A stretch of DNA of 64,000 bases, taken from positions 4,340,001 to 4,404,000 of the forward strand of contig CATNEN010000025.1 in the NCBI GenBank assembly GCA_950097015.1, read 5' to 3'. The position numbers and the translations under genes are program-made. This DNA comes from Macrostomum hystrix. Its lineage: Eukaryota; Animalia; Platyhelminthes. A model generated the notes under the pieces. The model did not search any database. It saw only the letters and a program-made list of their open reading frames with translations, and had not been told where the DNA came from. Shown in pieces: positions 23,945 through 61,901 of the stretch. The number at the start of each line of letters is the position of its first letter. The first letter of the stretch is position 1.

Positions 23945-24510
23945 CTACATCAGATAGACAACTAGCCGGTCAGCGTAGCCACTTCCCACTCTGCTGGGCG
24001 CGTCCTGGATATAGTTGTAGATTAGTACCGGCACAGAGCCCTTGAAGCCCTCGCTGATCCATGGGCAGGCGTCATCTTTGTCCGAAACGACGAAGAAGCT
24101 GCGCTCACTGTCGCAGCCACCGCCAGCGCTGCTAATGGAGAAGTGCCTCTTCCTGGACGCATCGCCCTCAAGCGAGAATTGGCTGAATTCTGTTCTACCG
24201 ATCCAGAAGGGGTAGGAGGACTCGAGTCTCTCCTTTGAGAACCAGTTGTCACGCGTCAGCTTGTCTGTGTCTCTGGCAACATTGAAAATCACCTGCGACA
24301 CGACGCTGTTCCCCTCACGCATTTCAGCAACCATTCTGGACTTGCCCGACTGCTTCACAGTCAGTGCCAGCTGGTCAAGGAGATCCGACCGATAAACTGG
24401 CGGCAACGAGCCGTCTGTGGGCATCTTGAAGTCTTGCCTGTGTGCAAAAACGTTCAACGCCTCCCTCCCGATGTTGGCTTCGATGGTGAACAACAGCTGC
24501 TTGTACTCCT
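23945..24510 (-). CDS. Modular secreted protein, left copy, module 12 (terminal, ends VYLM*)
   Basis: tgtag|AG acceptor; the 182-aa ORF is identical to that at 61353-61901. Confidence 0.88.
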
Positions 24511-24602
24511 CTACAATGTTGCAAAAGGTATAAATTCAAGTTTGTGCAGTGCATAATAAGAGACCAGCAAGACAAAATACTCCTCAGGGTAAAAAAGCTC
24601 AC

Positions 24603-25214
24603 CAAAAACGATAAATTTCTTAAACTCAGCACGCGGATCATTAAACTCGTTAGACAAATAGATGAGCATTCTATCAGCGTATCCCGCACTCTCATGGAAA
24701 GGCCGACCTTGCTCTCGGTTGTAAACAAGAGTCGGAGCGGAGCCTCGCCAACCTCGAGTGACCCAGTCGCAATGGCCTTGATAGTCCGACACCATGATAA
24801 AGCCCGCATCTCTCTCACAGCCGCCGTAATTGTTGCTAATGAAGAACCTTCGCTTTTGGCCCACTTCACCGTCCAGAGAAAAGTAATTAAACTCCTTTCT
24901 GCTGATTGGGTACGGATACGAAGACTCAAGCCTGAGCAATGAGAACCAGTTCTCCTTGTTTAGCTTGTCAGTGTCGGTGGAGACATCAAATACAACTTGC
25001 GACACGACCTGATCGTCTTTACGCATTTCCAAGATCATCTTTTTCATTCCTGACTCCCTCACAGCCCGTGGCAGCTCGTCCATCAGATCGGATCTGTAGA
25101 CTGGAGGCAGAGATCCGTCAGCCGGCATCTTGAAGTTTTGTTGATGTTTGAGTGTCTCCAGCGCTTCCATGTGCACGTTCGGAACAATGGTGAACAACAG
25201 CTGCTTGTCTTTTT
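24603..25214 (-). CDS. Modular secreted protein, left copy, module 11 (X-type)
   Basis: 612-nt phase 1-1 exon; ttccag acceptor, gtgag donor. Confidence 0.88.
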
Positions 25215-25444
25215 CTGGAAACCAAGCGGAAAGCTACGAGCTATTAACAAGTATTCTCCCTTATCAAATTCAAATAAGAATTTTATTAGCCAATAAATGA
25301 TTAAAATATCTTTAAAACAAGCGTGGCGATTCCCAAAAAGATTCAGACAAATAATTATTTAGGGCGTGACTCTTCTAGAACCAATCGTTTCATGCACACA
25401 TACACTATTCCCATTTAGGCACTACGCTCGTAAACAAAACTTAC

Positions 25445-26059
25445 CGAACAAAATTTCTTGTTTGAATTCCGCGCGAAGATCTCTCACAGAGTCCGTCAGG
25501 TAGAGCAGGAACCGATCGGCATAGTCGACTCCACTTCTGAAAGTTGTCGTCCGGTACCTGTTGTAGATGAGAACTGGTGCCGAGCCCTTCCAGCCCTCGT
25601 TGGCCCAGCTGCAAACATCGCGTCTGTCGGAAATCACCCAGAAGCCACGGTCATTGTCGCATCCGCCTCCAGAGAACGCTACGAAAAAGCCCCGCTTCTG
25701 ATTCGGGTCCCCGTCAATTGTGAAATGGCTGAAGCGCTGCTTTGCCTCGATGCGGAACGGGTAGGATGACACAAGTCGAGAGTGCGAGAACCAGTTCTTC
25801 AGGGTGATCTCGTCAGTGTTGTCGGACAGATCAAACACCATCTGTGCAACCACCTGGTCGTTCTTGATCATCTCGCCGACCATCTTTGTCTTTCCTGTCT
25901 TCTTCACAGTGAGAGCGAGTTGATCGAGCAGGTCCGATCTGTAGACACGAGGCAGAGATCCGTCAGCGGGCGCTTTGTAGTTCTGTTGGAAGGAGTACGT
26001 CTGCACCGCCTCGGTCTGGATGTTCGAAGTGATCGTGAACAGCACCTGCTTGTTGCCGT
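25445..26059 (-). CDS. Modular secreted protein, left copy, module 10 (E-type)
   Basis: 615-nt phase 1-1 exon; tttcag acceptor, gtaag donor. Confidence 0.88.
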
Positions 26060-26192
26060 CTGAAAATTAACATTTTTGTTGTTGACGTTGAATGTAGGTA
26101 CAATTTAAACATGAAATCCATTCGCTTGTGGCAATTTAAAAGCATAATGGGTAATCGTTCTGGTGCAATAAACGCGTTGCTGTAAATCCTAC

Positions 26193-26804
26193 CAACAATG
26201 AGCGGCCTCTTGAACTCCTCTCTGAGATCGGGCATCTCCTTGGCCAGGTAGATAATGAGTCTGTCGGCGTACCCCGCCGCCTCGTGGAAAGGTCGACCTT
26301 GCTCTCGGTTGTAAATCAGAATCGGAGCAGTTCCTCGCCACCCTCGAGTGACCCAGTCGCAATGACCGTGAGCATCTGACACCATGATGAAGCCAGTCTC
26401 TCTCTCGCATCCACCGTACCGATTGTTGATGAAGAACCTTCGCTTCGAACCGACCTCGCCATCGAGAGAGAAAAAGTTAAACTCACTCCGATCCACTGAG
26501 TACGGATACGTCGACTCAAGTCTTTGTCTAGTAAACCAGTTCTCCATAGTGAGCTTTTCAGTGTCTGTGGACACATCGAACACGATTTGCGACACGACCT
26601 GATTATCTTTGCGCATTTCTACGACAATGTTTTTTGCAGCAGATTTTTTAACTGTCTGAGACAGCTTGTCCAAAAGATCGGATCTGTAGACTGGAGGCAG
26701 AGATCCATCGGCAGGCATTTTGAAGTGTTGCTGATGCTTGTATGTTTCTAGGGCTTCCATGCGTACGTTCGGAACAATGGTGAACAGCAGCTGCTTTCCT
26801 TTCT
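26193..26804 (-). CDS. Modular secreted protein, left copy, module 9 (X-type)
   Basis: 612-nt phase 1-1 exon; ccttag acceptor, gtagg donor. Confidence 0.88.
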
Positions 26805-27763: not shown

Positions 27764-28375
27764 CGAAAAATACTTCCTTCTGAAAGTCGGAGCGAAGATC
27801 CGGCACCTCCTTGGCCAGGTAGATAATGAGTCTGTTGGCGTATCCAGCAGTCTCCTGGAACGGTCTTCCCGGCCTGCTGCTGTAAATCAGAGTCGGAGTA
27901 GAACCTCGCCACCCTCGAGTGACCCAATCGCAATGACCGTGAGCATCTGACACCATGATGAAGCCAGTCTCTCTCTCGCATCCACCGTACCGATTGTTGA
28001 TGAAGAACCTTCGCTTCACTCCAACCTCGCCATCGAGAGAGAAAAAGTTGAACTCACTCCGATCAACTGAGTACGGATACGTAGACTCGAGTCTGTCTTT
28101 GGAAAACCAGTTCAGACTGCTCAGCTCGTCTGTGTCGGTGGACACATCAAACACGACCTGTGAGACGACCTGATTGTCTTTGCGCATCTCGACGACCATT
28201 TTTCTCCTTCCTGACTCCCTCACAGCCCGCGGCAGCTCGTCCATCAGATCGGATCTGTAGACTGGAGGCAGAGATCCGTCAGCCGGCATCTTGAAGTTTT
28301 GTTGATGTTTGAGTGTCTCCAGCGCTTCCATGTGCACGTTCGGAACAATGGTGAACAACAGCTGCTTGTCTTTTT
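27764..28375 (-). CDS. Modular secreted protein, left copy, module 8 (X-type)
   Basis: 612-nt phase 1-1 exon. Confidence 0.88.
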
Positions 28376-28605: not shown

Positions 28606-29220
28606 CGAACAAAATTTCTTGTTTGAATTCCGCGCGAAGATCTCTCACAGAGTCCGTCAGGTAGAGCAGGAACCGATCGGCATAGTCGACTCCACTTCTG
28701 AAAGTTGTCGTCCGGTACCTGTTGTAGATGAGAGCTGGTGCCGAGCCCTTCCAGCCCTCGTTGGCCCAGCTGCAAACATCGCGTCTGTCGGAAATCACCC
28801 AGAAGCCACGGTCATTGTCGCATCCGCCTCCAGAGAACGCTACGAAAAAGCCCCTCTTCTGATTCGGGTCCCCGTCAATTGTGAAATGGCTGAAGCGCTG
28901 CTTTGCCTCGATGCGGAACGGGTAGGATGACACAAGTCGAGAGTGCGAGAACCAGTTCTTCAGGGTGATCTCGTCGGTGTTGTCGGACAGATCAAACACC
29001 ATCTGTGCAACCACCTGGTCGTTCTTGATCATCTCGCCGACCATCTTTGTCTTTCCTGTCTTCTTCACAGTGAGAGCGAGTTGATCGAGCAGGTCCGATC
29101 TGTAGACACGAGGCAGAGATCCGTCAGCGGGCGCTTTGTAGTTCTGTTGGAAGGAGTACGTCTGCACCGCCTCGGTCTGGATGTTCGAAGTGATCGTGAA
29201 CAGCACCTGCTTGTTACCGC
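28606..29220 (-). CDS. Modular secreted protein, left copy, module 7 (E-type)
   Basis: 615-nt phase 1-1 exon. Confidence 0.88.
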
Positions 29221-29878
29221 CTGAAAATAAATAATGTGTTTTTGCATATAAATATACTTCATGCTTCGACTCGTGGACAAAGATATTAAAGCTCGTTTAG
29301 GAGTAGAGACTTTCTGCTAAATCAAGCGGTACTGTTTGACGAAATTGGTTACAGTTTTTCGTGACACTTCCCATTCACGAGTTCATATCTCTGAAAAGGA
29401 GGATAGGGTAGAAATGGTATTTTTTACTATACAAATCGATGCTTTCGGTAGTCAGCTTGATTCGGAAGCCAGCCACGTTCAAGTTTGCACTCCTGCCGTC
29501 GTTCACAATGTTGCCGAAGCTATTGAAGCGGCGCTTGGAGCCCTTCAGACCAGCGCGACGGCGGTTCCGGTGGCGGGTTGCGTCTGCATAAGTGACACGT
29601 CGATAGACCAGTGTTCTTCCTCACACCCGACTTTGCAATCGCTTCACCGTCAGGGGCTGAGAAATCCGGATGTATGTTGAGCTTATTCTCGACTCCGCTA
29701 ATCCTCAACCTGGGTCACGGCAAGTGTCTTTCAACGTCTTGCTCAATTTTTCGGTGCATCCCGGACGCGGAGCGGAAATGATCATCCGCAACGTATATAT
29801 TATAGACCCAGCAACAAAGTCAATACTTCACAAGCCTGCACATCACAAAAATTCCCTATCCTCTTCCACAGCGCTTAC

Positions 29879-30490
29879 CCACAATGAGCGGCCTCTTGAA
29901 CTCCTCTCTGAGATCGGGTACATCCTTGGACAGGTAGATAATGAGTCTGTCGGCGTACCCCGCCGCCTCGTGGAAAGATCGACCTTGCTCTCGACTGTAA
30001 ATCAGAGTCGGAGCAGATCCTCGCCACCCTCGAGTGACCCAGTCGCAATGACCGTGAGCATCTGACACCATGATGAAGCCAGTCTCTCTCTCGCATCCAC
30101 CGTACCGATTGTTGATGAAGAACCTTCGCTTCGAACCAACCTCGCCATCGAGCGAGAAAAAGTTGAACTCACTCCGATCAACTGAGTACGGGTATGTTGA
30201 CTCAAGTCTTTGTTTAGAAAACCAGTTCTCCTTAGTGAGTTTTTCAGTGTCTGTGGACACATCAAACACGACCTGCGACACAACCTGATTGTCTTTGCGC
30301 ATCTCGACGACCATTTTTCTCGTTCCTGACTCCCTCACAGCCCGTGGCAGCTCGTCTACCAGATCGGATCTGTAAACTGCAGGCAGAGATCCGTCAGCCG
30401 GCATCTTGAAGTTTTGTTGATACTCGAATGTCTCCAGGGCTTCCAAGTGTACGTTCGGAACAATGGTGAACAGCAGCTGCTTGTCTTTTT
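29879..30490 (-). CDS. Modular secreted protein, left copy, module 6 (X-type)
   Basis: 612-nt phase 1-1 exon. Confidence 0.88.
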
Positions 30491-30640
30491 CTGAAAAGCA
30501 AGGGAGATACAAAAAACTAAGCTTATCTTGAATCCACAAGTCACTTCTGTAAAAAGTGACCTTAGAAAACTTGTATTATTAAACATACGAGCTAGTTTCC
30601 TGCTCATTGTTTTAAAAAAACTTTTTTTGTTTTCGCTCAC

Positions 30641-31255
30641 CAAATATAATTGGTTTCTTAAACTCTGGGCGCAGGTCCTTTACATTATCTGTCAGGTAGA
30701 GCAGGAACCGATCGGCATAGTCGACTCCACTTCTGAAAGTTGTCGTCCGGTACCTGTTGTAGATGAGAACTGGTGCCGAGCCCTTCCAGCCCTCGTTGGC
30801 CCAGCTGCAAACATCGCGTCTGTCGGAAATCACCCAGAAGCCACGGTCATTGTCGCATCCGCCTCCAGAGAACGCTACGAAAAAGCCCCGCTTCTGATTC
30901 GGGTCCCCGTCAATTGTGAAATGGCTGAAGCGCTGCTTTGCCTCGATGCGGAACGGGTAGGATGACACAAGTCGAGAGTGCGAGAACCAGTTCTTCAGGG
31001 TGATCTCGTCGGTGTTGTCGGACAGATCGAACACCAACTGTGCAACCACCTTGTCGTTCTTGATCATCTCGCCGACCATCTTTGTCTTTCCTGTCTTCTT
31101 CACAGTGAGAGCGAGTTGATCGAGCAGGTCCGATCTGTAGACACGAGGCAGAGATCCGTCAGCGGGCGCTTTGTAGTTCTGTTGGAAGGAGTACGTCTGC
31201 AACGCCTCGGTCTGGATGTTCGAAGTGATCGTGAACAGCACCTGCTTGTTGCCGT
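30641..31255 (-). CDS. Modular secreted protein, left copy, module 5 (E-type)
   Basis: 615-nt phase 1-1 exon. Confidence 0.88.
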
Positions 31256-31388
31256 CTGAAAATTAACATTTTTGTTGTTGACGTTGAATGTAGGTACAAT
31301 TTAAACATGAAATCCATTCGCTTGTGGCAATTTAAAAGCATAATGGGTAATCGTTCTGGTGCAATAAACGCGTTGCTGTAAATCCTAC

Positions 31389-32000
31389 CAACAATGAGCG
31401 GCCTCTTGAACTCCTCTCTGAGATCGGGCATCTCTTTGGCCAGGTATATAATGAGTCTGTCGGCGTACCCCGCCGCCTCGTGGAAAGATCGACCTTGCTC
31501 TCGACTGTAAATCAGAGTCGGAGCAGATCCTCGCCACCCTCGAGTGACCCAGTCGCAATGACCGTGAGCATCTGACACCATGATGAATCCAGTCTCTCTC
31601 TCGCATCCACCGTACCGATTGTTGATGAAGAACCTTCGCTTCGAACCGACCTCGCCATCGAGAGAGAAAAAGTTAAACTCACTCCGATCCACTGAGTACG
31701 GATATGTCGACTCGAGTCTTTGTCTAGTAAACCAGTTCTCCATAGTGAGCTTTTCAGTGTCTGTGGACACATCGAACACGACTTGCGACACGACCTGATT
31801 ATCTTTGCGCATTTCTACGACAATGTTCTTCTTTCCTGACTGCTTCACAGCCCATGGTAGTTCGTCCAGCAAGTCAGATCTGTAGACTGGAGGCAAAGAC
31901 CCATCAGCCGGCATCTTGAAGTTCTGCTGGTGCTCGAAGGTGTCATGGGCCTCCATGTGTACGTTCGGAACAATGGTGAACAGCAGCTGCTTGTCCTTCT
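31389..32000 (-). CDS. Modular secreted protein, left copy, module 4 (X-type)
   Basis: 612-nt phase 1-1 exon. Confidence 0.88.
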
Positions 32001-32104
32001 CTGCAATTTGATTCGATTTGTTTTTACGTAATATTTTTTACCTTTCGCTCAGAATATATTTTTGTGCGTTAGATTATTCATGGCATAGCATTTTTTGAAC
32101 TTAC

Positions 32105-32719
32105 CGAATTCAATCGGCTTCTTGAACTCCTTTCGCAGGACATCAACAGTATTGGTGAGGTAGATTACAAAACGGTCTGCGTAGTCCACACCACTCCGGA
32201 ACGTCGTTGTGCGATACCTATTGTAGAGGAGCACTGGAGCGGCGCCCAGCCAGCCCTCAGAGCCCCAGCTGCATTGATCTTTCTTGTCAGACACGAGCCA
32301 GAATCCCAGGTCATTGTCGCAGCCCTTTCCCGTGTCCGTTACTGCGAAGTTTCTGCTCATCGATTTGTCACCGTCGATGCTAAAGTAGTTGAGATGAACC
32401 TTTTTAGAAATCTGGTATGGGTAGGCTGACTCTAGTCTGTCCCTAGAGAACCAGTTCGTCAGGGTTAGCGAGTCTGTGTCGGTTGAAACGTCAAACACTA
32501 GTCGGGCGACAACATCATTGTCTTTGCGCATTTCGGCGATCATCTTTTTCCTTCCCGAGCGCTCAACAGTCTTAGCCAGCTGGTCCAGCAGATCCGAGCG
32601 GTAGATGAGCGGCAGCGATCTATCATCTGGGATCGGGTAGTCTTGCTGGTGCTTGAACGTGTCTAGAGCCTCCTTTCCGACTCTTGACGTGATCGTGAAC
32701 AATATTTGCTTATCATCAT
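32105..32719 (-). CDS. Modular secreted protein, left copy, module 3 (E-like)
   Basis: 615-nt phase 1-1 exon. Confidence 0.88.
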
Positions 32720-32790
32720 CTGAAATGTAGTTTAAGTTGCAGAAATCTCCAATTGTTTCTGAATGCAAACACAGGATTTTAATAACGCAC

Positions 32791-33402
32791 CGACAACAAA
32801 CGGCCGCTTGTAGTCCCATCGCCTGTCCTCTACTTCGTGCGTGAGGTACACCAGCATGCGGTCGGCCGAATCTACTCCCTGGTGGAAGGGCCGGCTCTGA
32901 AGCCGGTTGTACAGCAGCAGCGGAGGTGAGCCCCGCCAGTAGCGCCTAGCCCAGTCGCAGGTGTCGTGAGAGTCAGAGATGGCGATGAAGCCCGCATCGT
33001 TCTCGCAGCCTCCGTAGTTGTAACTGATGTAGAAGCGACGCTGCACCGTCTTGTCCCCTTCTAGCGAGAAGAAGTTAAACTTGCTCTTGTCTATTAGGTA
33101 GGGGTATGAGGACTCCAGGCGGTCGGTTGAGAACCAGTTCTCAATGTTTAGACTGTCCGTGTTCTTGCTCACATTGAAGACCACTTGTGCCACCACAGAA
33201 TCAGCTTTGACCAGCTCCACCACCATCTGCGTCATGCCCGAGTCCTTTACAGTCCGCGGCAGATCGTCCAGCAGGTCCGATCGGTAAAGCACTGGCAGCT
33301 TGTCATCGATTGGAGATCTATAGTTCTGCTGCTCGGTGAAAGTCTCAAGAACGCTCTTGTGGATGTTGGCCTTGATCGTGTACAGAAGCTGCTTTCTTTC
33401 GG
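32791..33402 (-). CDS. Modular secreted protein, left copy, module 2 (X-like)
   Basis: 612-nt phase 1-1 exon. Confidence 0.88.
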
Positions 33403-33533
33403 CTGCAAGGGAATGAGTCAATGCGTGACTTCGAAATGCATGATGTAAAATGAATATTTTAAGGCTGATATTTCATATGCGATCTGTGCTCGAAAGAGGT
33501 AACTTAAAAGGTAACCAGTAATGAAAATAGCAC

Positions 33534-34157
33534 CATGGAAAAAGGGCGTCCTGAACTCGGCTCGAAACTCGTCCACTGTGTCTGTGAGGTACACGAGGAA
33601 CTGGTCCGCAAACGCGGCGCCCTGCTGCATGGTGCGGTCCTTGAATCGGTTGTAGACAAGCACTGGAGCCAGGCCCTTCCAGGCTTTATGGGCCCAGCCG
33701 CAGGGGTCCCTAGCGCCGGACAGGAACCAGAAGCCGCGGTCGCGTTCGCAGCCCTCGTTGCTGATTGCGATTAAAAAGCTGCGCGATAAACTCGCGTCGC
33801 CTTTGACGGAGAATTTGAAAAACTTTGCCGCGTCTTCGAGCTTATAGGGCCAGGCGCCAACTAGGCGAGACGGCGAGAACCAGTTAAACTGATCGACAGT
33901 GTCCGTGTAGTCGCCGATGTCGAAAACGACGCGCATCACGGCGGCTCTATCGACGCGCATCTCGGCCACAATGTTTTTTTTGCCAAGTCGACGAACGGCG
34001 CCAGGCAAGTCGTCGAGAAGGTCGGACCGGTACACCGCCGGTAGCGGCTCATTCGGCGACGGGGCCGGTCGGTTTCCGTTGCCCCTGGTGATGAACGCCT
34101 TCTGCGGGTCCTCGCCGATGTTGCTACGGATGGTGAAGAGTAGCGTCTTGTCGTCCT
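33534..34157 (-). CDS. Modular secreted protein, left copy, module 1
   Basis: 624-nt phase 1-1 exon beginning (x)DDKTLLFTIRSNIGEDPQKAF; the acceptor catgcag has a weak pyrimidine tract. Confidence 0.82.
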
Positions 34158-35254
34158 CTGCATGGTTGGTGCAAGGTTCGATTGAGATGTCATTCAGCGA
34201 ACAATAAACCTATAGCTCTCTGGTGTGATTAGAAATTGATGATATCATTTTTGCCATAGAACCCACTTCACTGTTGCAAGTCGCTGAACTCTCCGACGCT
34301 TAACTAAAGGACGCTTCATTCTCGACTACTTTAGTTCATACATTTTCAAATTTGATGATTTTGGTGGGTGTGGCGCCCCCCCCCCTTGTCCATGGACCGA
34401 GCAGCCTTTGGATGCGCCACGCAAGAGTAACTCAATGTGCTCAATAGAGTCAACCATAAAGAGAATGGTTGATGTATCATTTCTGCCATATAAAATTGAA
34501 CCACTGACATTATGGACCGAAATTGAACTTTATACCTTAATTATATTTCATATATTTTAGTACAACCAATCTTAACAAGAGGAGAGTGACACCAAAAAAA
34601 TGTCTAGTAAATTTTTGGAAATAAGCCCGCCTTATCTTTCACTTTAAATGAAAATATTGCTAGCATTTTACTGACGTTTCTAACAATTTCTGGTTGCTAA
34701 AGCAGTATTTTTAAGTCATGAAAGTCTCAAGTGAGGAATTGAAGGCCGCCAACTTCTCACCCTGCAGGGTTAGAGCATAGATAAGCTGAGTAGCAAGACG
34801 AGCGAAACATGTTTTTAACCATGGCAACGCATTTTGTGTCAAGAATTTTGTGTCGCCAAAATGTTTGAGCGCAAAAACAGATTAAATTCGTTTTAGGAGC
34901 GTCTTTTCGATTAATCATCTCTAGTGCTTAAAGTCAATGCCGACGATAAGATCAACAGGTACCTTTTTGTTCTGATTTAGCTATAGTCAATGTATAAGAA
35001 TTTTTTGTGTGGCCGTTTCATTCTTTGAAATGGCCACATGCTTGAATTGCCATTAATCGTAACCATTAATCAGATTGCGTCACTCAGAAGCGATAAGTGT
35101 TGAAAACAGCCTTTTCAGTTATTGACTTGCCGGTGGACAGGGCTTTTTAGGCTGACCACTGTAACGAAACTTTTTTCAGCTTCTATCTTGACTCTAAACT
35201 ACTCGTAGATTGGGTTTAAAGATACTATTCATGGGTGCAATAAATGCACAATGA

Positions 35255-35380
35255 AGGGATTGTAGTAATCACTTGAGGGTCGGGGGTTCGACTCTTGATT
35301 CCACTAGAACGATTTGAGTCACTGAGCTCTTACGAGCGTAAATTGGTATTAACTCCCCCAGTCCATGGACTGAACAGCCG
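35255..35380 (+). mobile_element. tRNA-derived SINE, family B (internally deleted copy)
   Basis: ggttcgactcttgattcc head and cccagtccatggactgaacag end shared with the copies at 46462 and 51150. Confidence 0.55.
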
Positions 35381-35570
35381 TACGCAGCCTTCAAATGCGC
35401 CGCGCAATAGCTGCGGCTGTGCTGTCGGCTGCACATCTGGCCCAATAGGGGCAGGTGCAAGCAGTTATTAATTTGACTTCGAGCTGCATGTATACATCTC
35501 AACGTCATCAGTCCCTATGGGCTAACCCAGCAGTGGAGCAACGATTTGTGTCCACGAAAACAGTACTCAC

Positions 35571-35667
35571 CGAACGTGAAGCCATCGGCGGATGCGACGT
35601 CAGCAGCCTGAGCAGTGGCTGCCACCCACGCGAACACAATCAGGCAGATCAGTCGTAGGCCAGCCAT
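35571..35667 (-). CDS. Modular secreted protein, left copy, exon 1 (signal peptide)
   Basis: MAGLRLICLIVFAWVAATAQAADVASADGFTF plus G|gtgagt phase-1 donor; hydrophobic core and AxA cleavage motif; same reading in the right copy. Confidence 0.85.
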
Positions 35668-36912: not shown

Positions 36913-36924
36913 CTACGAGTGCAA

Positions 36925-39312: not shown

Positions 39313-39399
39313 CGTCCGCCTTTTACTCGTCAATATTTGCAAAATCGGCACGGAATTCTCCATTCTAGCGAATTCCCCAAGCAATCTTTCATTTATCCG

Positions 39400-50097: not shown

Positions 50098-50857
50098 GAT
50101 CATTCATAGGAAGCAGATACAAGGCTCTTCTTTTGATATAACTCACAAAATATGTTGCTTCGATGAATTTTATAAAGATTTATTCATGAATAATTGATCT
50201 TCATACTATTTTAGTTTCTGTATCATGCAGCAATTATAGTCTGAAGCTAACTAGTGACTAACTTGAATTCTAGAATCTTTGTTTAATCGAATACATAGAT
50301 ATTTATTAGCAATTAATTATTAGCAATATCATTAAAAATAGTTGGCTATGATTGTATGCCCAACTCACTGCTATATCATCGATGTCATCTTCTAGTGGTC
50401 CTTGGCTAGAACGCTCAGAGAATTTGAAAATATTTTACCTTGATTTTTCATCGATGTGCATGTTAAATTTATTCATGAAAATATTCTTTTCGATAAGTTA
50501 AAAGAATAACAGTGCTACGAGCTACATCTTATTGTCAGCATTTTTTAACATTCGCAAACATTATAATTTGTTTTAAGTCGTTTTGCGTAAAATCCGGTAG
50601 CGTCAATTCAAAGCGCATTTAAACGATTCGCTAAAGACCTTTCGCCTCGGGTCTCAGTTTTAATTGATAAGAGAGCCGCTCTTGTCTGACTCTGTCATTG
50701 CTGACTTTGAGGACAGCAAGCGTTCGTCAAAGTTTTGGTAATTTCTAATTTCCTTCGCTTTGTTCACATGGTACGGATCAATCTACTGCATAACAATTAG
50801 CCATAAAGTTTTCCTACAAAATCTAGCAGTGGACTTTTGTTGCGGTCAGCAGAAACA

Positions 50858-50954
50858 ATGGCTGGCCTACGACTGATCTGCCTGATTGTGTTCGCGTGGG
50901 TGGCAGCCACTGCTCAGGCTGCTGACGTCGCATCCGCCGATGGCTTCACGTTCG
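50858..50954 (+). CDS. Modular secreted protein, right copy, exon 1 (signal peptide)
   Basis: MAGLRLICLIVFAWVAATAQAADVASADGFTF plus G|gtgagt. Confidence 0.85.
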
Positions 50955-51149
50955 GTGAGTACTGTTTTCGTGGACACAAATCGTTGCTCCACTGCTGGGT
51001 TAGCCCATAGGGACTGATGACGTTGAGATGTATACATGCAGCTCGAAGTCAAATTAATAACTGCTTGCACCTGCCCCTATCGGGCCAGATGTGCAGCCGA
51101 CAGCACAGCCGCAGCTATTGCGCGGCGCATCTGAAGGCTGCGTACGGCT

Positions 51150-51345
51150 GTTCAGTCCATGGACTGGGGGACACCACACCACCCTCAATTACCCCAGCTG
51201 ATGCTGGTTACCCATTTAACAGCTGCGTGAACTGAATCAATGCAAAGTAAAGTGTCTTGCTGAATGGCACAAACTGCTCCACTGGAATCAAGAGTCGAAC
51301 CTCCGATCCCTCAAGTCATTAGTCCGCATGGCTACACCCCTTCGT
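51150..51345 (-). mobile_element. tRNA-derived SINE, family B, in intron 1 of the right copy
   Basis: Reverse strand: tRNA-like head, then agcaagacactttac...cagctgttaaatgggtaaccagcatc body, ending ccccagtccatggactgaacag. Confidence 0.65.
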
Positions 51346-52452
51346 TGTGCGTTAATTTCGATATACTGATAGCGTTAATTTAGCATTAGTATTGGCAATC
51401 TATAAACATAATCTAGTTTGAAGACTAGAGAAAAGCTGCAAAAATGTAATCAAAGGAGGTCAATTAGTCTCGCCAACGTCTAGCACTACAGTTAATCAAT
51501 AACTGATAAAAACCGTTTTTTAACACTTATCGCTTCTGGGTGACGATAAAGGTTAGGATTAGAAAAATGCAAGCGAATGACCAGAGAGGTTTCTAAGAAT
51601 GAAACGGCCACACAATAAATTCCTATACTTTAACTAGTTAAAGCAGAATAACAAAATGCCGTCAGTCGTCTTATCGTCAGTATTGATTTCCAGCATTAGA
51701 GACTAGTAATCGATAAGACGCTCCTAAAACGCAATTTAATCTGTGGGTTTTCACTCCACGTTTTGGCGCCCAAAAATTCTTGACGCAAGGTGCGTTGCCA
51801 TGGTTGCAAAAATGTTTTGCTCGTCTTGCTACTCAGCTTATCTATTCTCTCACCCAGAGTGAGAAGTTAGCGGCCTTCAATTGCTTAACTGAAATTTTCG
51901 TGACACAAAATCTGCTTTAGCAACCAGAATTTATTGGCCTCTTAGAAAAGTCAGTAAAATGCGAATAAAAGATTATTTGAACTGACAGACAAGGTCTATT
52001 AGCAAAAATGTGATAGAAATTTACCTTGGCGGCACTCTCGCTTTGATAAGATTAGTTCTACAGTAGTTAAATCCACATACATAGTTCAGTTTCGCTCCAT
52101 AATGTGGATGGTTAAATTTAAGCAGAAATGGTTAATTGATTTAGGCAGAAATGACTCCTCAACAAGTGTGTCTCAATGTACAGCCAAGAGACGCAGCGGC
52201 ATCTATTGTCTATGGGCTAGGGTGGGGAGGCGCGACACCCACTGAAATTTTTACTTCCCATTTTACAGCTGAATAATCTGAAGTAGTCGAGAATGAATCG
52301 TCCTTTAGTTAAGCGTCGGAGAGTTCAGCGACTTTCAACACTGAAGTGGGTTCTATGGCAAAAATGATATCATCAATTTCTAATCACACCAGGGAGCTAG
52401 ATTTATTTTTCGCTGAATGACATCTCAATCGAACCTTGCACCAACCATGCAG

Positions 52453-53076
52453 AGGACGACAAGACGCTACTCTTCACCATCCGTAGCAACATCGGCGAGG
52501 ACCCGCAGAAGGCGTTCATCACCAGGGGCAACGGAAACCGACCGGCCCCGTCGCCGAATGAGCCGCTACCGGCGGTGTACCGGTCCGACCTTCTCGACGA
52601 CTTGGCTGGCGCCGTTCGTCGACTTGGCAAAAAAAACATTGTGGCCGAGATGCGCGTCGATAGAGCCGCCGTGATGCGCGTCGTTTTCGACATCGGCGAC
52701 TACACGGACACTGTCGATCAGTTTAACTGGTTCTCGCCGTCTCGCCTAGTTGGCGCCTGGCCCTATAAGCTCGAAGACGCGGCAAAGTTTTTCAAATTCT
52801 CCGTCAAAGGCGACGTGAGTTTATCGCGCAGCTTTTTAATCGCAATCAGCAACGAGGGCTGCGAACGCGACCGCGGCTTCTGGTTCCTGTCCGGCGCTAG
52901 GGACCCCTGCGGCTGGGGCCATAAAGCCTGGAAGGGCCTGGCTCCAGTGCTTGTCTACAACCGATTCAAGGACCGCACCATGCAGCAGGGCGCCGCGTTT
53001 GCGGACCAGTTCCTCGTGTACCTCACAGACACAGTGGACGAGTTTCGAGCCGAGTTCAGGACGCCCTTTTTCCATG
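52453..53076 (+). CDS. Modular secreted protein, right copy, module 1
   Basis: 624-nt phase 1-1 exon. Confidence 0.82.
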
Positions 53077-53207
53077 GTGCCATTTTCATTACTGGTTACC
53101 TTTTAAGTTACCACTTTCGAGTACAGATCGCATATGAAATATCAGCCTTAAAATATTCATTTTACATAATGCATTTCGAAGTCACGCATTGAATCATTCC
53201 ATTGCAG

Positions 53208-53819
53208 CCGAAAGAAAGCAGCTTCTGTACACGATCAAGGCCAACATCCACAAGAGCGTTCTTGAGACTTTCACCGAGCAGCAGAACTATAGATCTCCAA
53301 TCGATGACAAGCTGCCAGTGCTTTACCGATCGGACCTGCTGGACGATCTGCCGCGGACTGTAAAGGACTCGGGCATGACGCAGATGGTGGTGGAGCTGGT
53401 CAAAGCTGATTCTGTGGTGGCACAAGTGGTCTTCAATGTGAGCAAGAACACGGACAGTCTAAACATTGAGAACTGGTTCTCAACCGACCGCCTGGAGTCC
53501 TCATACCCCTACCTAATAGACAAGAGCAAGTTTAACTTCTTCTCGCTAGAAGGGGACAAGACGGTGCAGCGTCGCTTCTACATCAGTTACAACTACGGAG
53601 GCTGCGAGAACGATGCGGGCTTCATCGCCATCTCTGACTCTCACGACACCTGCGACTGGGCTAGGCGCTACTGGCGGGGCTCACCTCCGCTGCTGCTGTA
53701 CAACCGGCTTCAGAGCCGGCCCTTCCACCAGGGAGTAGATTCGGCCGACCGCATGCTGGTGTACCTCACGCACGAAGTAGAGGACAGGCGATGGGACTAC
53801 AAGCGGCCGTTTGTTGTCG
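53208..53819 (+). CDS. Modular secreted protein, right copy, module 2
   Basis: 612-nt phase 1-1 exon. Confidence 0.88.
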
Positions 53820-53890
53820 GTGCGTTATTAAAATCCTGTGTTTGCATTCAGAAACAATTGGAGATTTCTGCAACTTAAACTACATTTCAG

Positions 53891-54505
53891 ATGATGATAA
53901 GCAAATATTGTTCACGATCACGTCAAGAGTCGGAAAGGAGGCTCTAGACACGTTCAAGCACCAGCAAGACTACCCGATCCCAGATGATAGATCGCTGCCG
54001 CTCATCTACCGCTCGGATCTGCTGGACCAGCTGGCTAAGACCGTTGAGCGCTCGGGAAGGAAAAAGATGATCGCCGAAATGCGCAAAGACAATGATGTTG
54101 TCGCCCGACTAGTGTTTGACGTTTCAACCGACACAGACTCGCTAACCCTGACGAACTGGTTCTCTAGGGACAGACTGGAGTCAGCCTACCCATACCAGAT
54201 TTCTAAAAAGGTTCATCTCAACTACTTTAGCATCGACGGTGACAAATCGATGAGCAGAAACTTCGCAGTAACGGACACGGGAAAGGGCTGCGACAATGAC
54301 CTGGGATTCTGGCTCGTGTCTGACAAGAAAGATCAATGCAGCTGGGGCTCTGAGGGCTGGCTGGGCGCCGCTCCAGTGCTTCTCTACAATAGGTATCGCA
54401 CAACGACGTTCCGGAGTGGTGTGGACTACGCAGACCGTTTTACAATCTACCTCACCAATACTGTTGATGTCCTGCGAAAGGAGTTCAAGAAGCCGATTGA
54501 ATTCG
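53891..54505 (+). CDS. Modular secreted protein, right copy, module 3
   Basis: 615-nt phase 1-1 exon. Confidence 0.88.
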
Positions 54506-54609
54506 GTAAGTTCAAAAAATCCTATGCCACACATAATCTAACGCACAAAAACATATTCTGAGCGAAAGGTAAAAAATATTACGTAAAAACAAATCGAATC
54601 AAATTGCAG

Positions 54610-55221
54610 AGAGGGACAAGCAGCTGCTGTTCACTATTGTTCCGAACGTACACATGGAGGCCCATGACACCTTCGAGCACCAGCAGAACTTCAAGATGCC
54701 AGCTGATGGGTCTTTGCCTCCAGTCTACAGATCTGACTTGCTGGACGAACTACCATGGGCTGTGAAGCAGTCAGGAAAGAAGAACATTGTCGTAGAAATG
54801 CGCAAAGATAATCAGGTCGTGTCGCAAGTCGTGTTCGATGTGTCCACAGACACTGAAAAGCTCACTAAGGAGAACTGGTTTTCTAGACAAAGACTCGAGT
54901 CGACATATCCGTACTCAGTGGATCGGAGTGAGTTCAACTTCTTCTCCATTGACGGAGATGTCGGAGCGAAACGAAGGTTCTTCATCAGCCATCGGTATCC
55001 CGGATGTGAGAAAGACGCTGGCTTCATTGTGGTGGCTGATGCCAAAGACGGTTGCAACTGGATCAGTCGAGGCTGGCAAGGATCTGCTCCGATTCTGATT
55101 TACAACCGAGAGCAAGGTCGACCTTTCCATGAGACCGCTGGTTACGCTGACAGACTCATTATCTACCTGGCCAAGGAGATGCCCGATCTCAGAGAGGAGT
55201 TCAAGAGGCCGCTCATTGTTG
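54610..55221 (+). CDS. Modular secreted protein, right copy, module 4 (X-type, SHRYPGC cassette)
   Basis: 612-nt phase 1-1 exon. Confidence 0.88.
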
Positions 55222-55353
55222 GTAAGATTTAAAGTGAGACGTTTATTGCACCAGAACCATTACCAATTATGCTTTTAAATTGGCAAAAGCGAAGTAATTC
55301 CGTGTTAAATTGTACCTACATTCAACGTCAACAACAAAAATGATAATTTTCAG

Positions 55354-55970
55354 ACGGCAACAAGCAGGTGCTGTTCACGATCACTTCGAACATCCAGACC
55401 GAGGCGGTGCAGACATTCTACTCACCACAGAACTACAAAGCACCCGCTGACGGATCTCTGCCTCGTGTCTACAGATCGGACCTGCTCGATCAACTCGCTC
55501 TCACTGTGAAGAAGACAGGAAAGACAAAGATGGTCGGCGAGATGATTCAAGAACGACCAGGTGGTTGCACAGATGGTGTTCGATCTGTCCGACAACACCG
55601 ACGAGATCACCCTGAAGAACTGGTTCTCGCACTCTCGACTTGTGTCATCCTACCCGTTCCGCATCGAGGCAAAGCAGCGCTTTGACCATTTCACAATTGA
55701 CGGGGACCCGAATCAGAAGAGGGGCTTTTTCGTAGCGTTCTCTGGAGGCGGATGCGACAATGACCGTGGCTTCTGGATGATTTCCTGACAGACGCGATGC
55801 TTGCAGCTGGGCCAACGAGGGCTGGAAGGGCTCGGCTCCAGTTCTTATCTATAACAGGTACAGGACGACAACATTCAGAAGTGGAGTCGACTATGCCGAT
55901 CGGTTCCTGCTCTACCTGACAGATAATGTAAAGGACCTGCGCCCAGAGTTTAAGAAACCAATTATATTTG
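55354..55970 (+). CDS. Modular secreted protein, right copy, module 5 (E-type) with two +1 insertions as assembled
   Basis: 617 nt vs 615 expected; extra T at ~55546 and ~55786 relative to sister modules. Confidence 0.7.
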
Positions 55971-56121
55971 GTGAGCGAAAACAAAAAAACGTTTTTTTAA
56001 AACAATGAGCAGGAAACTAGCTCGTATGTTTAATAATACAAGTTTTCTAAGGTCACTTTTTACAGAAGTGACTTGTGAATTCAAGATAAGCTTAGTTTTT
56101 TGTATCTCCCTTGCTTTTCAG

Positions 56122-56733
56122 AAAAAGACAAGCAGCTGCTGTTCACCATTGTTCCGAACGTACACTTGGAAGCCCTGGAGACATTCGAGTATCAACAAAA
56201 CTTCAAGATGCCGGCTGACGGATCTCTGCCTGCAGTTTACAGATCCGATCTGGTGGACGAGCTGCCACGGGCTGTGAGGGAGTCAGGAACGAGAAAAATG
56301 GTCGTCGAGATGCGCAAAGACAATCAGGTTGTGTCGCAGGTCGTGTTTGATGTGTCCACAGACACTGAAAAACTCACTAAGGAGAACTGGTTTTCTAAAC
56401 AAAGACTTGAGTCAACATACCCGTACTCAGTTGATCGGAGTGAGTTCAACTTTTTCTCGCTCGATGGCGAGGTTGGTTCGAAGCGAAGGTTCTTCATCAA
56501 CAATCGGTACGGTGGATGCGAGAGAGAGACTGGCTTCATCATGGTGTCAGATGCTCACGGTCATTGCGACTGGGTCACTCGAGGGTGGCGAGGATCTGCT
56601 CCGACTCTGATTTACAGTCGAGAGCAAGGTCGATCTTTTCACGAGGCGGCGGGGTACGCCGACAGACTCATTATCTACCTGGCCAAGGATGTACCCGATC
56701 TCAGAGAGGAGTTCAAGAGGCCGCTCTTTGTGG
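56122..56733 (+). CDS. Modular secreted protein, right copy, module 6 (X-type)
   Basis: 612-nt phase 1-1 exon. Confidence 0.88.
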
Positions 56734-57374
56734 GTAAGCGCTGTGGAAGAGGATAGGGAATTTTTGGATGTGCAGGCTTGTAAAGTATTGACTTTGTTGC
56801 TGGGTCTATTATATATACGTTGCGGATGCTCAGTTCCGCTCCGCGTCCGGGATGCACCGAAAAATTGAGCAAGACGTTGAAAGACACTTGCCGTGACCCA
56901 GGTTGAGGATTAGCGGAGTCGAGAATAAGCTCAACGTACAGATTTCTCAGCCCCTGACTGTGAAGCTATTGCAAAGTCGGGTGTGAGGAAGCACACTGGT
57001 CTATCGACGTGTCACTTAAGCAGACGCAACCCGCCACCTGAACCGCCGTCGCGCTGGTCTTAAGGGCTTTAAGCGCCGCTTCAATAGCTTCGGCAACATT
57101 GTGAGCGACAGCAGGAGTGCAAACTTACCGTGGCTGGCTTCCGAATCAAGCTGACTACCGAAAGCATCGATTCCAGACGCTAAAAACCGTATCTTTAATC
57201 TATCAACTCTTTACAGAGATTTGATCTTATGAATGCCTGTCAAAAAACTCTAGTCAATTACGTCAAGCAGTGCCGGTTTATGCAGCATAAAGTATTTAAT
57301 CCTAAACGAGCTTTAATATCTTTGACCACGAGTGGAAGCATGAATTATAACAAAAAAACTTTATTTACTTTCAG

Positions 57375-57990
57375 ATGGCAACAAGCAGGTGCTGTTCACG
57401 ATCACTTCGAACATCCAGACCGAGGCGGTGCAGACGTACTCCTTCCAACAGAACTACAAAGCGCCCGCTGACGGATCTCTGCCTCGTGTCTACAGATCGG
57501 ACCTGCTCGATCAACTCGCTCTCACTGTGAAGAAGACAGGGAAAGACAAAGATGGTCGGCGAGATGATCAAGAACGACCAGGTGGTTGCACAGATGGTGT
57601 TCGATCTGTCCGACAACACCGACGAGATCACCCTGAAGAACTGGTTCTCGCACTCTCGACTTGTGTCATCCTACCCGTTCCGGATTGATCCGCAGCAGCG
57701 ATTCCACCAATTCAGCATTGATGGAGATGCCGCGAGGAAGCGGGGCTTCTTCGTGCTGTTCCCGGATAATGGCTGCGATAACGACCGGGGCTTTTGGATG
57801 ATCGCTGATAGGCGGGATGACTGCAGCTGGGCCAACGAGGGCTGGAAGGGCTCGGCTCCAGTTCTTATCTACAACAGGTACCGGACGACAACGTTCAGAA
57901 GTGGAGTCGACTATGCCGATCGGTTCCTGCTCTACCTGACGGACTCTGTTAAAGATCTTCGTTCAGAGTTTAAACAAAAAATAATGTTTG
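57375..57990 (+). CDS. Modular secreted protein, right copy, module 7 (E-type) with one +1 insertion as assembled
   Basis: 616 nt vs 615 expected; extra G in the G-run at ~57541. Confidence 0.7.
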
Positions 57991-58254
57991 GTAAGTTCTT
58001 TCCAGAAATTTTGTTTCGCGCAAAATGTAAATACGCTCGCAGCTTGTGTTGTGCTTTAAACTATTTTTTCTATTACTCGCACCCAAAAGAATTTATACTC
58101 TTAATTTTAGCCTAAATGTTTTATGAGCATCGCAACGCTTTATTAAAAGATGCTATTAAGATTTCTTTTAAGTCACGTCTTATTATATTTCTTATTTGAA
58201 TTTGATAAGGGAGAATACTTGCCAGTCGCTCGTAGCTTTCCGCTTGGTTTCCAG

Positions 58255-58866
58255 AAAAAGACAAGCAGCTGTTGTTCACCATTGTTCCGAACGTGCACAT
58301 GGAAGCGCTGGAGACACTCAAACATCAACAAAACTTCAAGATGCCGGCTGACGGATCTCTGCCTCCAGTCTACAGATCCGATCTGATGGACGAGCTGCCG
58401 CGGGCTGTGAGGGAGTCAGGAACGAGAAAAATGGTCGTCGAGATGCGCAATGACAATCAGGTCGTCTCACAGGTCGTGTTTGATGTGTCCACCGACACAG
58501 ACGAGCTGAGCAGTCTGAACTGGTTTTCCAAAGATAGACTCGAGTCTACGTATCCGTACTCAGTTGATCGGAGGGAGTTCAACTTTTTCTCTCTCGATGG
58601 CGAGGTCGGAGTGAAGCGAAGGTTCTTCATCAACAATCGGTACGGTGGATGCGAGAGAGAGACTGGCTTCATCATGGTGTCAGATGCTCACGGTCATTGC
58701 GATTGGGTCACTCGAGGGTGGCGAGGATCTGCTCCGACTCTGATTTACAGCAGCAGGCCGGGAAGACCGTTCCAGGAGACTGCTGGATACGCCGACAGAC
58801 TCATTATCTACCTGGCCAAGGAGGTGCCGGATCTTCGCTCCGACTTTCAGAATGAAGTATTTTTCG
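58255..58866 (+). CDS. Modular secreted protein, right copy, module 8 (X-type)
   Basis: 612-nt phase 1-1 exon. Confidence 0.88.
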
Positions 58867-59189
58867 GTGAGGACGCTTTTCCGTTTGTTGATTACCATGC
58901 TTATTTCTGACTTTGCCTTTGCAATTAGTATTATTCAAAGCAAAATACTTTAGTCAAAACTTAATGAAAGCCAAATGAACAGCAATTGGTGCTAATTGGG
59001 CTTTAAGTTCTGCTTCCCGACGTGAACATTCAAGAACACAGCATTTGTCAAACACTCATAAAGGCTATTTTAGTGTTTTAAGAAAGCTAACTGCCTGGAT
59101 TTCTAGCACTTTAATTCCGTGGAGACAGTTGTAACCTTAAAGAGCAAAATTAAACAAACATTTTTAATTCTTTCCCCAATTTTCCTTAG

Positions 59190-59801
59190 AGAAAGGAAAG
59201 CAGCTGCTGTTCACCATTGTTCCGAACGTACACATGGAAGCCCTGGAAACATACAAGCATCAGCAACACTTCAAAATGCCAGCCGATGGATCTCTGCCTC
59301 CAGTCTACAGATCCGATCTTTTGGACAAGCTGTCTCAGGCGGTAAAAAAATCTGCTACAAAAAACATTGTCGTAGAAATGCGCAAAGATAATCAGGTCGT
59401 GTCGCAAGTCGTGTTCGATGTGTCCACAGACACTGAAAAGCTCACTAAGGAGAACTGGTTTTCTAGACAAAGACTCGAGTCGACATATCCGTACTCAGTG
59501 GATCGGAGTGAGTTCAACTTCTTCTCCATTGACGGAGATGTCGGAGCGAAACGAAGGTTCTTCATCAGCCATCGGTATCCCGGATGTGAGAAAGACGCTG
59601 GCTTCATCGTGGTGGCTGATGCCAAAGACGGTTGCAACTGGATCAGTCGAGGCTGGCAAGGATCTGCTCCGATTCTGATTTACAACCGAGAGCAAGGCCG
59701 ACCTTTCCATGAGACCGCTGGTTACGCTGACAGACTCATTATCTACCTGGCCAAGGAGATGCCCGATCTCAGAGAGGAGTTCAAGAGGCCGCTCATTGTT
59801 G
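59190..59801 (+). CDS. Modular secreted protein, right copy, module 9 (X-type, SHRYPGC cassette)
   Basis: 612-nt phase 1-1 exon. Confidence 0.88.
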
Positions 59802-59934
59802 GTAAGATTTACAGCAACGCGTTTATTGCACCAGAACCATTACCAATTATGCTTTTAAATTGCCAAAAGCGAAGTAATTCCGTGTTTAAATTGTACCTAC
59901 ATTCAACGTCAACAACAAAAATGTTAATTTTCAG

Positions 59935-60549
59935 ACGGCAACAAGCAGGTGCTGTTCACGATCACTTCGAACATCCAGACCGAGGCGGTGCAGACATTCT
60001 ACTCACCACAGAACTACAAAGCACCCGCTGACGGATCTCTGCCTCGTGTCTACAGATCGGACCTGCTCGATCAACTCGCTCTCACTGTGAAGAAGACGGG
60101 AAAGACAAAGATGGTCGGCGAGATGATCAAGAACGACCAGGTGGTTGCACAGATGGTGTTCGATCTGTCCGACAACACCGACGAGATCACCCTGAAGAAC
60201 TGGTTCTCGCACTCTCGACTTGTGTCATCCTACCCGTTCCGGATTGATCCGCAGCAGCGATTCCACCAATTCAGCATTGATGGAGATGCCGAGAGGAAGC
60301 GGGGCTTCTTCGTGCTGTTCCCGGAAAATGGCTGCGATAACGACCGGGGCTTTTGGATGATCGCTGATAGGCGGGATGACTGCAGCTGGGCCAACGAGGG
60401 CTGGAAGGGCTCGGCTCCAGTTCTTATCTACAACAGGTACAGGACGACAACATTCAGAAGTGGGGTCGACTATGCCGATCGGTTCCTGCTTTACCTGACG
60501 GACTCGGTAAAGGATTTACGCGTGGAGTTTAATCAAAGGATTATTATCG
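59935..60549 (+). CDS. Modular secreted protein, right copy, module 10 (E-type), GC donor
   Basis: Exactly 615 nt if the donor is G|GCAAGT at 60550. Confidence 0.85.
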
Positions 60550-60631
60550 GCAAGTAACAAGTGTTTTTGTCATTTGTATTTTATTCAGTTTTAATGTTGT
60601 TTCTTTAAATTGTGCGTTTCTGACTTTTTAG

Positions 60632-61243
60632 AGCCTGGAAAGCAGCTGCTGTTCACCATTGTTCCGAACGTACACTTGGAAGCCCGGGAGACATTCGAGT
60701 ATCAACAAAACTTCAAGATGCCGGCTGACGGATCTCTGCCTCCAGTCTACAGGTCCGATCTGGTGGACGAGCTGCCACGGGCTGTGAAGGAGTCAGGAAT
60801 GAAAAAGATGATCTTGGAAATGCGTAAAGACGATCAGGTCGTGTCGCAAGTTGTATTTGATGTCTCCACCGACACTGACAAGCTAAACAAGGAGAACTGG
60901 TTCTCATTGCTCAGGCTTGAGTCTTCGTATCCGTACCCAATCAGCAGAAAGGAGTTTAATTACTTTTCTCTGGACGGTGAAGTGGGCCAAAAGCGAAGGT
61001 TCTTCATTAGCAACAATTACGGCGGCTGTGAGAGAGATGCGGGCTTTATCATGGTGTCGGACTATCAAGGCCATTGCGACTGGGTCACTCGAGGTTGGCG
61101 AGGCTCCGCTCCGACTCTTGTTTACAACCGAGAGCAAGGTCGGCCTTTCCATGAGAGTGCGGGATACGCTGATAGAATGCTCATCTATTTGTCTAACGAG
61201 TTTAATGATCCGCGTGCTGAGTTTAAGAAATTTATCGCTTTTG
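60632..61243 (+). CDS. Modular secreted protein, right copy, module 11 (X-type)
   Basis: 612-nt phase 1-1 exon. Confidence 0.88.
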
Positions 61244-61335
61244 GTGAGCTTTTTTACCCTGAGGAGTATTTTGTCTTGCTGGTCTCTTATTATGCACTGC
61301 ACAAACTTGAATTTCTACCTTTTGCAATATTGTAG

Positions 61336-61901
61336 AGGAGTACAAGCAGCTGTTGTTCACCATCGAAGCCAACATCGGGAGGGAGGCGTTGAACGTTTTT
61401 GCACACAGGCAAGACTTCAAGATGCCCACAGACGGCTCCTTGCCGCCAGTTTATCGGTCGGATCTCCTTGACCAGCTGGCACTGACTGTGAAGCAGTCGG
61501 GCAAGTCCAGAATGGTTGCTGAAATGCGTGAGGGGAACAGCGTCGTGTCGCAGGTGATTTTCAATGTTGCCAGAGACACAGACAAGCTGACGCGTGATAA
61601 CTGGTTCTCAAAGGAGAGACTCGAGTCCTCCTACCCCTTCTGGATCGGTAGAACAGAATTCAGCCAATTCTCGCTTGAGGGCGATGCGTCCAGGAAGAGG
61701 CACTTCTCCATTAGCAGCGCTGGCGGCGGCTGCGACAGTGAGCGCAGCTTCTTCGTCGTTTCGGACAAAGATGACGCCTGCCCATGGATCAGCGAGGGCT
61801 TCAAGGGCTCTGTGCCGGTACTAATCTACAACTATATCCAGGACGCGCCCAGCAGAGTGGGAAGTGGCTACGCTGACCGGCTAGTTGTCTATCTGATGTA
61901 G
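61336..61901 (+). CDS. Modular secreted protein, right copy, module 12 (terminal)
   Basis: tgtag|AG acceptor; ends VYLM*; no TM or GPI tail. Confidence 0.88.

Follow-up and report, generated by a model that had tools for sequence, protein, structure and literature searches.

The window analysed here, a 64,000-nucleotide stretch of the genome of the flatworm Macrostomum hystrix (contig CATNEN010000025.1, positions 4,340,001 to 4,404,000), carries two divergent genes that form an inverted pair. Each of them encodes a secreted ~283-kDa protein of 12 modules, in which each module would probably be a diverged B+P unit of the fibrinogen-related domain (FReD) and the whole chain a multivalent extracellular binder or cross-linker. 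The gene itself is real, as demonstrated by its structure, its splicing, its signal peptide for secretion, the transcription of both allele types and the range of the family to which its modules belong. In a literature search combining Macrostomum with fibrinogen, gland or secretory markers, no description of the gene was found.

Structure, transcription and product of the left gene

The left gene occupies positions 35667 to 23945 of the window on the minus strand. When rebuilt by script, it consisted of 13 exons separated by GT..AG introns, all in phase 1. The signal-peptide exon is followed by 12 phase-1 exons of 612-624 nt, except for the last, which has 566 nt, and each of exons 2 to 13 contains one domain. 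Once joined, the exons gave a coding sequence of 7419 nt, corresponding to 2472 amino acids and a stop codon with no internal stop, the same figures as in an earlier reading made from the letters alone (hereafter the sequence-only reading). The exons are as follows (the A and B types of domain are described below).

Left exon 1: 35571-35667, minus strand; start codon at 35667, signal peptide, 97 nt, phase-1 donor GTGAGT; joined to 34157 in RNA contigs
Left exon 2: 33534-34157, minus strand; domain 1, unique type; both flanking junctions in RNA contigs
Left exon 3: 32791-33402, minus strand; domain 2, unique type; in RNA contigs
Left exon 4: 32105-32719, minus strand; domain 3, unique, B-like; in RNA contigs
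Left exon 5: 31389-32000, minus strand; domain 4, A type; in RNA contigs
Left exon 6: 30641-31255, minus strand; domain 5, B type; in RNA contigs
Left exon 7: 29879-30490, minus strand; domain 6, A type; 5' junction in RNA contigs
Left exon 8: 28606-29220, minus strand; domain 7, B type; junction predicted from GT..AG, phase and M. lignano model P0176
Left exon 9: 27764-28375, minus strand; domain 8, A type
Left exon 10: 26193-26804, minus strand; domain 9, A type
Left exon 11: 25445-26059, minus strand; domain 10, B type, 99% identity to domain 7
Left exon 12: 24603-25214, minus strand; domain 11, A type; domain used for the structure model
Left exon 13: 23945-24510, minus strand; domain 12, terminal type, and stop codon

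To this structure, RNA contigs from four runs (three from one study, the fourth from a second) were compared over the window stretch 29850-35750. Although the label of these runs as RNA is a guess, they were treated as such because contigs that lack introns at high word depth, in runs of ~47 Mb, are expected from RNA. The contigs skip exactly 35571|34157, 33534|33402, 32791|32719, 32105|32000, 31389|31255 and 30641|30490, i.e. introns of 1413, 131, 71, 104, 133 and 150 nt, whose CT..AC ends on the plus strand are the GT..AG of the gene. One contig of 2012 nt starts at 35728, which leaves 61 nt of 5' untranslated region, and runs through exons 1 to 4 with 0-2 differences per exon. Six of the 12 junctions, from exon 1 to exon 7, were thus seen in RNA; they include the join of exon 1 to module 1 and the first five module-to-module joins, which the sequence-only reading had proposed to check in this way, and were exact in contigs from the two studies. 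The junctions of exons 8 to 13 are supported by canonical splice sites, by phase and by identical module-to-module joins in protein models of Macrostomum lignano.

A dispersed repeat of ~117 nt lies in the first intron of both genes (35355-35457 on the left, 51050-51171 on the right). A first look at the genome gave 1246 candidate copies of it, and 38 scored copies beyond the locus were 93-96% identical. RNA contigs pile up on this repeat at a word depth of ~2000 and extend into many other loci. Neither the Rfam nor the tRNA scan of the window gave a match, for the repeat or elsewhere.

The encoded protein begins with the 21-residue signal peptide MAGLRLICLIVFAWVAATAQA, in which AQA precedes the likely cleavage site. 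This is the sole hydrophobic stretch of the protein, and neither a transmembrane segment nor a glycosylphosphatidylinositol-type tail was found at the C-terminus (..DRLVVYLM); together with the 12 copies of a single module, these features agree with the sequence-only reading, which had noted no such tail and no other domain type. The mature protein has 2451 amino acids, ~283 kDa and an isoelectric point (pI) of 6.8. Its 12 domains align over 203-207 columns with a mean column identity of 67%, and each contains two Cys residues, 16 residues apart. A module comprises ~190 structured residues and a conserved linker of ~15 residues to the next one. For database searches and folding, single exons were used as queries, the joined protein being handled in scripts only (frame, length, composition).

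A mucin-like nature was considered and rejected. A composition scan of the mature protein found no Ser/Thr/Pro-rich region, these residues numbering at most 14 per any 50, and the 2451 residues include a single N-glycosylation sequon, compared with 12.9 +/- 3.4 expected from shuffles.

The inverted duplication and exon-wise concerted evolution

The arms 36105-23754 and 50410-62081, of ~12.3 kb each, form an inverted duplication in which the 5' ends of the genes face each other, as the description of twin divergent genes had implied. In the right gene (50858-61901), an identical signal-peptide exon is followed by the 12 modules of the left gene, their order unchanged. The right exons and the sequence between the arms are listed below.

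Right exon 1: 50858-50954, plus strand; signal peptide; identical to left exon 1
Right exons 2-5: 52453-53076, 53208-53819, 53891-54505, 54610-55221, plus strand; open frames
Right exon 6: 55354-55970, plus strand; 1-bp insertions in the assembly at 55546 and 55786
Right exon 7: 56122-56733, plus strand; open frame
Right exon 8: 57375-57990, plus strand; 1-bp insertion in the assembly at 57539
Right exons 9-11: 58255-58866, 59190-59801, 59935-60549, plus strand; GC donor at 60550 after exon 11
Right exons 12-13: 60632-61243, 61336-61901, plus strand; stop in exon 13
Spacer: 36105-50410, no strand; 14.3 kb, non-palindromic, outside the duplicated arms; minisatellites and two TALE-homeobox-like exons

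As assembled, the right copy cannot be joined into an open frame because of its three 1-bp insertions and the GC donor after exon 11. It could thus be a young pseudogene with three frameshifts (55546, 55786 and 57539) and a donor weakened from GT to GC, the left copy alone being functional. This possibility is considered unlikely. Spliced RNA contigs over exon 6 carry the right-copy alleles at 11 of 11 sites in one study and at 15 of 16 in the other. A copy of the right type is therefore transcribed, and both exon-6 insertions are absent from these contigs, with no gaps at their sites. The two insertions are therefore probably assembly errors or polymorphisms; consensus errors or private mutations explain the exon-6 frameshifts better than an old pseudogene state would. 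This RNA result covers the two exon-6 insertions only, since the one at 57539 falls outside the compared stretch. Exon 1 and a 440-nt upstream region are conserved between the copies. The overall ratio of nonsynonymous to synonymous divergence between them (dN/dS) was 0.25, and the sequences indicate that purifying selection acts on the gene. As for the donor, animals use functional GC-AG introns with a ..GCAAGT context. A much less probable alternative is that the duplication is an assembly artefact, in which two haplotypes or a chimeric read of a single locus were laid out as a palindrome. The arms are indeed 88-100% identical exon by exon, and both allele types could be alleles of an outbred sample. 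However, the arms are separated by the 14.3-kb non-palindromic spacer with its distinct satellites and homeobox exons, they differ in intron content, and their divergence is mosaic, with a module homogenisation that differs from one arm to the other.

This mosaic is evident from the exon identities, which reach 98.5-100% for exons 1-4, 7, 9 and 13 and 88-91% for exons 5, 8, 10 and 11. Modules 1 to 3 are each unique (the third being B-like), modules 4 to 11 follow the order A, B, A, B, A, A, B, A, and module 12 is of a distinct terminal type. The left B modules are 95-99% identical to one another, while right B modules 7 and 10 are 87-89% and right B module 5 is 93-97% identical to them. This pattern shows homogenisation by copying within one gene. 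Copying within and between both genes keeps some modules nearly identical, and the locus is a clear case of exon-wise concerted evolution acting within and between duplicated genes. Since each module sits on its own symmetric phase-1 exon, the array grew by exon duplication. The M. lignano orthologue, represented by models A0A1I8G0W3 and A0A1I8G660, contains the same A, B and terminal types with 71-89% identity (B 71%, terminal 89%, the latter for left exon 13 against the C-terminus of P0176), and the architecture is therefore older than the split of the two species.

The spacer contains features of its own. An 18-bp satellite (42737-44919) has 121 copies with 94% matches, a GC content of ~32% and a strong GC skew; the open reading frames of 739-785 amino acids found there on both strands (42667-45024) were discarded as artefacts of this satellite. 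Seven further minisatellite arrays have periods of 13-36 bp; one of them, at 47990-50099, consists of 58 copies of a 36-bp unit. Two plus-strand frames, 40207-40626 and 41480-42064, each correspond to one half of a TALE-class homeodomain (matches to Pfam Homeobox_KN, positions 1-30 with E 5.7e-10 and positions 17-40 with E 0.0028), and the putative intron between them includes a 16-bp minisatellite. A homeobox gene may thus lie between the twin genes. Elsewhere in the window, the open frame 1359-2267 (minus strand) matches fibronectin type III with E 1.7e-6; it probably represents an exon of a neighbouring, unrelated gene.

The module family and its link to the fibrinogen-related domain

A profile of the 12 modules was searched against 1.84 billion cluster representatives and detected 533 relatives at E <=1e-3, 14 of them at E <=1e-30. 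Beyond the window gene, they belong to other Macrostomum genes, amphioxus, a crinoid, scallop and other molluscs, corals and Myxococcota. The closest matches are M. lignano models, the longest of 2137 and 2048 amino acids, which are fragmentary and bear spurious names ('Peptidase S9', 'TSPc', 'MULTIHEME_CYTC'); automated annotation thus mishandles the gene, as had been anticipated. The domain had been described as unnamed. It has indeed no Pfam name, but the matches show that it does not stand alone: it is part of a widespread extracellular family, unnamed and uncharacterised, that is linked to the FReD. In the distant relatives, the partner domains are Sushi, EGF, TSP1, fn3, ZP and PAN/Apple. 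Apart from proteins of Myxococcota/'Deltaproteobacteria' metagenome-assembled genomes (P0022, P0154, P0163, P0169, P0170 and P0174), in which the module follows an NF040941 piece and is accompanied by myxobacterial Cys-rich repeats, the family was found solely in animals.

The M. hystrix assembly (220 Mb, 42 contigs) contains 64 module matches, and the twin gene is the largest member. The others include clusters of 2-5 modules on other contigs and single-exon genes for secreted proteins of ~300 amino acids, in which a Cys-containing N-terminal region precedes a single C-terminal module and Pfam recognised no domain. Pfam searches with the Macrostomum paralogues, single-domain ones included, returned noise only. 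On present data, the 12-copy array without an A part appears to be confined to Macrostomum.

The link to the fibrinogen-related domain comes from the relatives. In many single-domain ones, the ~50 residues directly before the module match fibrinogen-type profiles: Pfam Fibrinogen_C (PF00147) at positions ~5-60, COLFI at 23-70 and, in the bacterial proteins, the 46-residue NCBIfam model NF040941 ('fibrinogen-like YCDxxxxGGGW domain'). When a profile of full-length members was compared with the PDB, it matched chains of the fibrinogen superfamily only (intelectin-type lectins, tenascin, fibrinogen beta/gamma, angiopoietin-2, FIBCD1, tachylectin-5A and MFAP4), and through this N-terminal piece only, while a PDB sequence search with the family profile gave no match. 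A fibrillar collagen C-propeptide (COLFI) identity was rejected, as only the A-part region of the relatives matches it and no such chain is among the structural matches. The window modules begin at the strand after the GGGW motif, their '..LLFTI..' aligning with '..GGWTMVFKI..', and therefore lack the A part. The A-part motif YCD..GGGW(T) was not found in them, each starting with ..KQLLFTI.. right after the previous linker; it is confined to the distant single-domain relatives.

The fold was modelled with AlphaFold2 for domain 11 on a 120-sequence alignment, giving a mean predicted local distance difference test (pLDDT) score of 94.7 and a predicted TM-score (pTM) of 0.90, with residues 1-189 structured and the ~15-residue linker at lower confidence. 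This model replaced an earlier shallow one (12 paralogues, pLDDT 69.7). All of its alignments with fibrinogen-type chains start at the target's GGWT strand (gamma 189, beta 247, L-ficolin 115), i.e. at the very point where independent sequence evidence places the start of the module. The same genome has undergone a large expansion of fibrinogen-type genes, with more than 111 exons matching the canonical fibrinogen C-terminal domain (e.g. C5:1841507-1842172 and C38:22514416-22514976). Many of these exons begin at Pfam position 40-42, which places the A part on a separate exon there too.

Proposed function and comparison with known systems

According to the proposed mechanism, the protein, once secreted, would be a multivalent extracellular binder or cross-linker with 12 equivalent sites on one chain for a glycan or matrix ligand. 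A glycan is suggested only by the fibrinogen-like ancestry and by the recognition-type partner domains of the relatives. Each module would derive from the B+P part of the FReD, strongly diverged and standing alone without the A part. Of the sequence-only reading, which had proposed a multivalent binder, the signal peptide and the 12-module array are supported; the mucus variant does not agree with the composition, and the protein is not one of the known Macrostomum adhesive proteins. A lectin-like or immune binder is inferred from a weak fold resemblance.

Several results weigh against this interpretation. Direct RNA support for the junctions spans exons 1 to 7 only, and the RNA nature of the runs, whose label is a guess, depends on the intron-less contigs. 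Pfam gave no match for the window domains, with no PF00147 match for six of them at E values up to 1 or for the Macrostomum paralogues, Foldseek searches of the PDB with both models returned no significant match, and hhalign comparison of the family with 16 canonical fibrinogen-type exons (B+P) of the same genome gave a probability of 0.4%. Because of this last value, descent from a fibrinogen-type B+P unit is retained as the likeliest origin of the module, rather favoured on balance, but membership of the FReD is not taken as established. In the module, no motif of a calcium or sugar site was recognisable or could be aligned, and ligand binding is therefore pure inference. As to a well-characterised family that would overturn the reading, none was found, the Pfam and PDB profile searches being without a match to the module itself.

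The protein could instead be secreted as structural material (eggshell, rhabdite or gland-granule matrix, or else extracellular matrix), with modules that associate with one another and recognise no ligand. It is very large, uniform and near-neutral, its linkers are conserved, and its contigs reach high word depth in small whole-animal runs; the depletion of N-glycosylation sequons (1 vs 12.9 +/- 3.4) and the uniform composition fit this alternative at least as well as they fit a binder. Nevertheless, a structural role is judged improbable, at about the same level as the pseudogene explanation, since the protein has no low-complexity, cross-linking-residue or Cys-rich signature and its relatives are mosaic proteins with the recognition-type domains PAN, Sushi and TSP1. 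It is also conceivable, with a very low probability that is no higher than that of an assembly artefact, that the module belongs to the TLDc type, or that its fold is unrelated and only superficially like both TLDc and fibrinogen domains. TLDc proteins (Oxr1, NCOA7, TBC1D24) are, according to their titles, intracellular partners of the V-ATPase and differ from the secreted module with its conserved Cys pair in having no disulfide pair and no sequence link to it. Moreover, Pfam found no TLDc match, fewer residues of the model were aligned (113-125, compared with 130-157 for fibrinogen-type chains), and the sequence link of the relatives leads to the fibrinogen A part.

Taken together, these features favour the secreted multivalent binder with diverged B+P modules. 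A more far-reaching view is offered tentatively, and with less confidence: the modules may represent an ancient unnamed extracellular family, shared by cnidarians, molluscs, echinoderms, cephalochordates, flatworms and Myxococcota, that arose as a far-diverged offshoot of the FReD able to fold and work without the A part. From it, exon duplication and continuing gene conversion would have given Macrostomum a new kind of giant 12-valent secreted protein for recognition or cross-linking, encoded by an expressed gene pair. If a diverged B+P unit does work without the A part, the known range of the fibrinogen-type lectin superfamily would be widened. The family, with more than 500 representative-cluster proteins, lies outside Pfam coverage. 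For the gene itself, a clean, RNA-supported full-length model of a large and apparently abundant transcript is now available, while the public M. lignano orthologue consists of misnamed fragments. The protein would be a natural 12-valent scaffold for glycan- or matrix-binding tests in a flatworm for which RNA interference and in situ methods exist.

Among known systems, Mlig-ap1 and Mlig-ap2 are likewise giant secreted repetitive proteins of Macrostomum. Mlig-ap1 has KR-rich repeats with vWD/C8/TIL/EGF, and Mlig-ap2 has vWD/TIL/LDLR/TSP1 and basic repeats of 221-255 amino acids (PMC6410801). Identity with either was rejected: the window gene contains none of their Lys/Arg-rich or basic 221-255-aa repeats nor their vWD, C8, TIL, EGF, LDLR or TSP1 domains, and the pI of its product is 6.8. 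The FReD proteins (PF00147; ficolins, intelectins, angiopoietins, tenascin and FREPs) are extracellular like the module, in which a Cys pair followed by an aromatic strand near the C-terminal third is FReD-like, and the single-domain relatives open with a bona fide A part and GGWT strand; the window modules differ in giving no PF00147 match and in being without an A part. The closest counterparts are the 'GGGWT + C-terminal module' proteins of amphioxus, corals, molluscs, a crinoid and Myxococcota. They are automatically named 'Fibrinogen C-terminal domain-containing protein' or 'uncharacterized', the former name being based on ~50 N-terminal residues only. They have the same module, with E values down to 1e-62 against the family profile and TM-scores of 0.75-0.78 between models. 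These proteins combine one to four copies with GGGWT, PAN/Apple, Sushi, EGF, TSP1 or ZP domains, whereas the Macrostomum gene encodes a pure 12-copy array.

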